Source: Selaginella moellendorffii
Lineage: Eukaryota; Plantae; Lycopodiophyta
Assembly (NCBI RefSeq): GCF_000143415.4
Contig: NW_003314264.1
Span: 3,833,229-3,897,228 of the forward strand
Length of the DNA stretch: 64,000 nucleotides
Reading direction: 5' to 3'
The first letter of the stretch is position 1. Each line of letters starts with the position of its first letter. Below are positions 31,708 to 32,712 of the stretch, in pieces. The notes under the pieces are model-generated. The model did not search any database, had not been told where the DNA came from, and was given only the letters and a program-made list of their open reading frames with translations. A program made the position numbers and the translations under genes.

Positions 31708-32712
31708 ATGGGTTCGATCGCCATGATCCAAAGTGGTAAGCACTAGATGGTTTTCCTTGCGCTGCTAATTTGCTTTGGTTTTTTTCTTTGCAGGCTCTTG
31801 CATCCACCACAAGCTGGGTATTTTACCGAGAACAACAGCAAAGGGCCTAACAGCTTCATTGAGCATGTCTAGCGCTTTTGAGATTAGAAGGGATCTTAGA
31901 GCTGCTTCTTCGGCAGGTAGGTGGATCGACATACATTCTTCCTCTATGTTATTACATGTTTCCTCTTTCTTCCAAAGTCGGCATACAGGGAATTTTGTCC
32001 AGCGCTTTTTCTCGCCAGCCACCAGTGTGTCTCGCCGTGAGAGCAAGCGCCGAATCCAAATCCAACGCTGAGCTCGTTAAAGACTCGTGGCGAGTCTTAA
32101 AGAGGGACGCTGGAACGCATGCTACCGCTTTCTTTCTCAAGTAAGTTCCTTTTGCTGTTTGTCAAACCAGCTCACGTCTAAGTCCTCTCATCGCAGGATT
32201 TTCGAGATCGCTCCCACTGCCAAGCAGCTCTTTTCGTTCATGAGGGACTCCACCGTCCCGGCGGAAGCTAATCCGCACTTAAAGTCTCACGCACTCGTCG
32301 TCTTTACAATGGTACGCTTGTTCTAGCAGGATTGATATCATCAAACAAGCGTTTTCTCCATTTTCATGACTAGACTTGCGAGGCCGCGATTCTTCTCGGA
32401 GAGGATCCCACACTAGCAGCTTTGAGACCAAAGCTCTTGGAGATGGGACATACGCACGTCGTCCACAAGGTCATCGACGAGCATTTCGACGTAAGTTTGC
32501 TTGTCTTCTCAATTCGTTGAGCTATTCATTCCTTCAATTTTTTTCTTCTCTTTCAGGTGGTAAAATATGCGTTGTTGGAGACTCTAAAAGAAGCACTCAA
32601 GGACGAGTGGAGCCCAAGCATGAAAGCGGCGTGGGCGGAAGCCTACGACGCTGTGACGAAGATTATCAAAGACGAGATGCACGCTGTGAGACGCATGGAA
32701 GTAGCAGTCTAG
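31708..32712 (+). CDS. Non-symbiotic hemoglobin (phytoglobin) with N-terminal extension
   Basis: LVKDSW; FFLKIFEIAP; LFSF (CD1 Phe); NPHLKSHA (distal His); MTCEAA; MGHTH (proximal His); DEHFDVVK; [14 protein letters not shown]. Three canonical plant globin introns are present. The two 5' exons are inferred. Confidence 0.9.

Follow-up and report, generated by a model that had tools for sequence, protein, structure and literature searches.

A six-exon, leader-bearing phytoglobin gene in Selaginella moellendorffii and the putative destination of its product

The question raised by this locus was whether a lycophyte phytoglobin is made with an N-terminal leader, and where such a leader would take it. 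The locus lies within a stretch of 64,000 nucleotides of S. moellendorffii DNA (the window). The original prediction described a five-intron gene in which two extra 5′ exons encode a plastid-transit-peptide-like leader. Its premise was that 3/3 plant haemoglobin genes have three introns and that the proteins are cytosolic or nuclear only. This premise is outdated in view of the reported chloroplast transit peptide (cTP) of sugar beet BvHb1.1, the phytoglobins localised to plastids and the many leader-bearing homologues with extra introns. The predicted five-intron structure with an in-frame N-terminal leader was backed by RNA.

Gene structure and transcripts of the locus

The locus is an expressed six-exon phytoglobin gene with a precursor of 233 amino acids. 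About 55% of the words of the stretch were present in many small public assemblies. Public assemblies from four studies (runs X1, X2, X4 and X8) were aligned to positions 31000–33600 of the window. The contigs of all four represent RNA, since intron-skipping joints were seen in each. The RNA-backed joints from these independent studies were 31735/31794, 31916/31978, 32140/32197, 32311/32374 and 32490/32557. Single contigs (X2 record 7 and X4 record 11) span exon 1 through every joint and continue past the stop codon. The features of the locus are as follows.

31493..31546, forward strand: intron directly after the TGA of the upstream EF-hand (CIB/CHP-like) gene; 54 nt, GT..AG
31547..31707, forward strand: transcribed region before the start codon; continuous RNA contig cover, no ATG
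31708..31735, forward strand: coding exon 1; 28 nt, residues 1–9 and 1 nt, with a phase-1 intron next
31736..31793, forward strand: intron 1 (first leader intron); 58 nt, GT..AG, phase 1, spliced in 4 of 4 runs
31794..31916, forward strand: coding exon 2 (central leader); 123 nt, residues 10–50, RNA-backed
31917..31977, forward strand: intron 2; 61 nt, GT..AG, phase 1, joint in 3 of 4 runs (X2, X4 and X8)
31978..32140, forward strand: coding exon 3; 163 nt, leader residues 51–73 and helices A to B12
32037–32045, forward strand: VRA codons in exon 3, the leader end
32141..32196, forward strand: intron 3 (canonical B12.2, inside FFLK/IFEIAP); 56 nt, phase 2, RNA-backed
32197..32311, forward strand: coding exon 4; 115 nt, carries distal His136
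32312..32373, forward strand: intron 4 (canonical, after VFTM); 62 nt, phase 0, RNA-backed
32374..32490, forward strand: coding exon 5; 117 nt, carries proximal His171
32491..32556, forward strand: intron 5 (canonical G7.0, after EHFD); 66 nt, phase 0, RNA-backed
32557..32712, forward strand: coding exon 6; 156 nt, TAG stop at 32710–32712

The start codon, intron 1 and exon 2 agreed with the original prediction. A scan of 31493–31707 found no ATG, and the ATG at 31708–31710, which lies on RNA contigs, is the first after the upstream stop (TGA, 31490–31492). The RNA confirmed exons 1 and 2 and introns 1 and 3–5, and the start of exon 3 had to be moved. Intron 2 had been placed with its acceptor at CAG 32025. 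This acceptor was rejected: the joint 31916/32026 was in no contig of the four runs. The exact 217-amino-acid product of that model was absent from a collection of 15 billion proteins. Exon 3 starts 48 nt earlier and in frame and so measures 163 nt instead of 115 nt; with the 16 extra residues the leader is about 73 amino acids long and the protein 233. The length of about 57 amino acids proposed earlier followed from the misplaced acceptor. Exons 1–3 are joined in frame in the RNA contigs, and the contig variants at 31879 and 32628 are synonymous by codon count.

The 233-residue product is identical (100%) to RefSeq XP_002963458.2, "hemoglobin-2 isoform X1" of S. moellendorffii, so the corrected gene model is already public. 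The second-haplotype allele, XP_002988171.2, differs solely by Q8H and R41S, both within the leader. Protein searches by word index, with the whole protein and with its mature domain as queries, gave 6 and 10 matches, none a Selaginella paralogue, and are too insensitive to exclude a leaderless one. The JGI 2011 model of the same locus (SELMODRAFT_80203/183637, UniProt D8QX12, 190 amino acids) is identical from VGIQ to the C-terminus. Its start is the in-frame ATG at 31956–31958 inside intron 2, whereas the RNA contigs and RefSeq have exons 1 and 2 instead. Beginning there, D8QX12 resembles a normal three-intron gene with a 30-residue extension. The practical consequence for Selaginella is that RNA backs the 233-residue RefSeq model, and the widely used UniProt entry starts in an intron. 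The earlier statement that no ATG sits directly before helix A holds only in part: the genomic DNA does contain this in-frame ATG, and the RNA contigs have it spliced out.

The upstream gene lies close to the globin gene. The intron at 31493–31546 was spliced in X1 and X8 (joint 31492/31547) and retained in X2 record 6 and X4 record 9, and contigs with this region continue into globin exons 1–3. The segment 31547..31707 is either globin 5′UTR or overlapping 3′UTR of the upstream gene. A TATA-like element, TATAAAGG, is present at 31637–31644; it was dropped as a sign of a transcription start near 31670, the contigs covering the box itself. The places where contigs break, 31618 and 31672, match SNPs at 31619, 31649 and 31671, and the common contig start at 31672 corresponds to a SNP bubble at 31671.

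Exons 1 and 2 might be read-through by-products of the EF-hand gene, with the functional mRNA starting in intron 2 and using ATG 31956 to give the 190-residue, three-intron form. Contigs X1 record 1 and X8 record 13 do pass from the upstream gene into globin exons, and an in-frame ATG is available. In run X1 the mean depth was 365 for the contig of exons 3–5 and 75 for the contig of exon 1; these depths are whole-contig means, unfit to rank exons, and a ranking of exon usage by them was rejected. Intron 2 was retained in no contig, and run X1 had no cover at 31957–31975. Three runs splice exon 2 to 31978, removing ATG 31956. The 190-residue form would in any case still have a 30-residue extension ending in VRA. 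The leader exons are also conserved with the same intron phases from liverwort to angiosperms, and since exons 1 and 2 are conserved across land plants, a read-through artefact is very improbable.

Three genes on the same strand, namely the EF-hand gene, the globin gene and a small downstream gene, are connected by RNA contigs across gaps of only 215 and 143 bp. The downstream gene occupies 32856–33528, with introns near 32937–33109, 33174–33221 and 33261–33317. The bridging contigs indicate overlapping UTRs or read-through transcription. Elsewhere in the window, two sharp dips in GC content were seen, at 6001–8000 (0.31) and 52001–54000 (0.29), against a background of about 0.49.

Globin domain, leader and putative targeting

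The gene encodes an entire 3/3 non-symbiotic phytoglobin, both haem histidines included. The Pfam Globin family (PF00042) matched with E = 1.5e-21 and 77.5 bits, against a cut-off of 22. Non-symbiotic haemoglobins of the PDB matched residues 77–225 at E = 2e-43 to 4e-41. The AlphaFold structure, built with a 42-sequence alignment, was an all-helical globin with pLDDT above 90 from about residue 75 to 233. H136 (distal, E7) and H171 (proximal, F8; 233-residue numbering) were invariant in this alignment, consistent with the predicted integrity of both heme ligands. Introns 3–5 (phases 2, 0 and 0) occupy the three conserved plant-globin intron positions.

The leader of 73–75 residues contains 21% Ser and Thr, 14–15% Ala, 11% Arg and Lys and 3% Asp and Glu. 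Its net charge is +6, and that of the mature globin part is −3. It ends in VRA↓SA(ES) just before helix A. The original prediction had described a leader poor in acidic residues with this end, and both points were borne out. The composition falls within the range of 35 other leaders compared, and no hydrophobic core typical of a signal peptide was found in the leader. Residues 1–70 of the AlphaFold structure had pLDDT below 50 and no secondary structure, with confidence climbing above 90 at about residue 75. In-frame Met residues occur at 1, 6 and 34 and then at 120, inside the globin; therefore, a functional globin from this mRNA must carry at least 40 leader residues.

The composition, the disorder and the V-R-A end of the leader suit a stromal import signal, which makes an organelle-imported globin handling O2 and NO a reasonable reading. 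The leader, disordered, basic and rich in hydroxyl residues, would take the apoprotein across the plastid envelope. It would then be removed near V-R-A↓S, at residues 71–74, and the mature globin of about 160 residues would bind haem in the stroma. There it could handle NO and O2, perhaps as an NO dioxygenase. Plastid import with cleavage close to VRA↓S has the best support among the mechanisms considered and is somewhat more probable than not, as predicted from composition, disorder, end motif, homology and the literature on BvHb1.1.

The −2R/−3R cleavage motifs that Huang et al. reportedly described for plant mitochondria in 2009 are also fitted by this boundary, with R-A-S↓A in Selaginella and R-A-F↓S in relatives. 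Since the same end motif suits MPP −2R/−3R sites, the leader might be a mitochondrial or dual-targeting presequence, placing the globin at or in mitochondria, for example in a phytoglobin–NO cycle under hypoxia. The leader is basic, with Ala, Ser, Leu and Arg and few acidic residues. Its best amphipathic 11-mer has a hydrophobic moment of 0.71, and Arg stands at −2 of VRA↓S, many relatives having R-A-F↓S, which corresponds to the plant −3R MPP motif. Against a mitochondrial destination, the length of 73 residues (75–105 in relatives) better suits a chloroplast transit peptide, and Ser and Thr are high, reaching 35% in the Riccia leader. Within the first 15 residues there is no charge and no Arg, the AlphaFold leader has no helix, and V-R-A↓ agrees with the consensus for the stromal peptidase. 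The sole member described in the literature, BvHb1.1, has also been termed a cTP carrier. A mitochondrial or dual presequence is possible but rather unlikely.

Leader-bearing relatives and ancestry of the leader

The original prediction had proposed a search for the same extension in other lineages, and leader-bearing globins were found in a liverwort, a fern and seed plants. An exhaustive profile search gave many single-domain globins of 205–265 amino acids with the domain starting at residue 45–105. Leader-bearing forms included those of Riccia fluitans (liverwort), Adiantum (fern), Ginkgo, Cryptomeria, Nymphaea, Tarenaya, Silene, Melastoma and others. Leader length in the phytoglobin relatives was 50–105 residues. 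A word search from the Silene protein gave proteins of 225–245 amino acids from over 60 genera of angiosperms, ranging from magnoliids to asterids. Its list included Beta vulgaris (236 amino acids), Spinacia and Vitis, alongside the usual forms of 155–170 amino acids. Multi-globin chains were also among the strongest matches of the exhaustive search, for example one of 638 amino acids with four domains and 45% identity, and they reached 2461 amino acids with 14 domains. Proteins of 335–339 amino acids from Vicia villosa and Trifolium subterraneum scored as two-globin chains and are probably of the two-haem MtGlb1-2 type (PMC7710986).

Gene structures were compared by mapping the proteins of eight relatives onto genomic loci. 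The three canonical globin introns were present at identical position and phase in Riccia, Adiantum, Cryptomeria, Tarenaya, Silene, Melastoma and Drosera, and the Nymphaea gene model had only the first of them. The position and phase of intron 3 were shared with eight other plant genes. A short exon 1 (37–97 nt) followed by a phase-1 intron occurred in Riccia, Adiantum, Cryptomeria, Nymphaea, Tarenaya, Silene and Melastoma. A second phase-1 leader intron was found in Riccia, Nymphaea, Silene and Melastoma (exon 3 of 121–130 nt) and also in Selaginella; Adiantum, Cryptomeria and Tarenaya had the first leader intron only. Compared with Riccia and Nymphaea, intron 2 of Selaginella is displaced upstream by about 14 codons, exon 3 measuring 163 nt as against 121 nt. 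The Drosera model, with leader introns of phase 0/0, was left out of account as probably mis-annotated by ab initio prediction. The deposited models of Nymphaea thermarum and Drosera rotundifolia look faulty, that of Nymphaea having a retained intron in the globin part.

The sequence directly before helix A was V-[RK]-A in Selaginella, Adiantum and most angiosperms and I-R-A in Ginkgo. The boundary motif V-[RK]-[AGS] was present in 24 of the 36 leaders scanned, both Selaginella alleles counted. Identity between the Selaginella leader and the other leaders was only 8–21%, and the homology of the leader rests on intron phase, intron position and the end motif. Among 27 angiosperm proteins, leader identity was 33% and domain identity 80%. 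Such faster change of the leader is as expected of a targeting peptide.

Most angiosperm leaders share a conserved island S-W-[VIL]-[RK]-[RT]-[DE], which can also be recognised in Cryptomeria. Selaginella has only F-E-I-R-R-D (residues 38–43) as a possible counterpart, and the second haplotype I-S-R-D. The island is unusual for a pure transit peptide and may have another role. Because of this island, the extension could instead stay uncleaved on a cytosolic or nuclear globin, as an intrinsically disordered region that serves regulation or interaction. Recombinant BvHb1.1 made with its leader attached kept ligand binding, which agrees with retention. However, in E. coli the leader caused full-length BvHb1.1 to aggregate (PMC6668756). 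The leader also evolves far faster than the domain, its composition is of the presequence type, and the conserved V-[RK]-A at the domain boundary resembles a processing site. A retained extension is possible but improbable.

A maximum-likelihood tree of the globin domains was built from 156 alignment columns with a midpoint root, its leaderless rows being picked from angiosperms only. The tree broadly tracked plant phylogeny. Selaginella fell in a starred set (100/96) of seven rows, together with Riccia, one more leader-bearing sequence and four rows for which no leader is labelled. Sister to this set were the ferns (99/94). Three gymnosperm sequences, all leader-bearing, lay outside the supported angiosperm clade (96/93). 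Within that clade the leader-bearing forms made up a short-branched, unresolved base, and the sampled leaderless class 1 and 2 sequences were nested within it. Counts of leader gain and loss on the tree were dropped, several unlabelled rows being probably 5′-truncated or leader-bearing.

Taken together, the gene represents the lycophytes in an old land-plant lineage of phytoglobins with leaders, one that has received little discussion and is typified by sugar beet BvHb1.1. A leader-bearing phytoglobin whose leader most likely directs plastid import is the best overall explanation of the locus, and we hold it with some confidence. A wider reading can be put forward tentatively, at less than even chances. 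The ancestral land-plant 3/3 phytoglobin may already have been leader-bearing and organelle-targeted, with two phase-1 leader introns. The well-studied leaderless forms of classes 1 and 2, cytosolic or nuclear, and the leghaemoglobins would then have arisen later, within seed plants or angiosperms, through loss of the leader exons, and the SW[VI]RR[DE] island would mark a second function of the leader beyond targeting. That the leader and its introns may be ancestral for land-plant 3/3 globins is the point most worth pursuing.

Comparison with known phytoglobins

Canonical class-1 phytoglobins (rice Hb1, 1D8U; Arabidopsis AHb1, 3ZHW; barley, 2OIF; sugar beet BvPgb1.2, 7ZOS) have the same three intron positions and phases as the globin part of the Selaginella gene. 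The FFLKIFEIAP and DEHF motifs and both histidines are also common to them. The canonical proteins are 152–171 amino acids long, with 2–17 residues before helix A and three introns in the gene. Unlike Selaginella, they have neither a leader nor a V-[RK]-A boundary. In the globin-domain tree they nest inside the angiosperm leader-bearing grade. Plastid globins with N-terminal targeting sequences also occur in Chlamydomonas, as chloroplast truncated (2/2) haemoglobins; these belong to another fold class and are unrelated in sequence to the 3/3 globins.

Recent papers portray class-1 phytoglobins as having no transit peptide (PMC12525094), and reviews of plant globins still take this view of phytoglobins and leave their occurrence in plastids without an explanation (PMC12525094, PMC13720644). 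Phytoglobins have been localised to plastids (Rubio 2019, as cited in PMC12525094 and PMC13720644). Searches on Selaginella and Phytogb0 globins and on phytoglobin transit peptides found no literature on lycophyte globin leaders.

Phytoglobins of the leader-bearing type are already known in plants, and the Selaginella case is neither unique nor a new kind of system. The closest described counterpart is sugar beet BvHb1.1/BvPgb1.1 (GenBank KF549980; Leiva-Eriksson et al. 2014, Plant Cell Physiol 55:834), a 3/3 phytoglobin preceded, like the Selaginella protein, by a leader of about 75–80 residues. PMC6668756 describes it as a class-1 non-symbiotic haemoglobin with an N-terminal cTP (citing Leiva-Eriksson 2014), running at 27 kDa compared with 17 kDa for BvHb1.2; its plastid location is there only "suggested", on account of the cTP. 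The 236-residue protein of Beta vulgaris has a 78-residue leader ending in VKA before FSEEQ; its species and its size (27 kDa), rather than the accession, lead us to infer that it is BvHb1.1.

The Beta and Selaginella leaders are similar in composition. The domains of the two proteins are about 49% identical and the leaders about 16%. The gene of Silene, which is close to Beta, has the same six-exon plan as Selaginella, including the two phase-1 introns in the leader. The length of exon 3 differs, at 163 nt in Selaginella and 130 nt in Silene, and the angiosperm island LSWV[KR]RE is represented in Selaginella at best by IRRD. Since the leader-bearing form and its shared exon plan extend from liverworts and lycophytes to angiosperms, organellar handling of NO and O2 by a dedicated 3/3 globin may be ancient and not a peculiarity of sugar beet.
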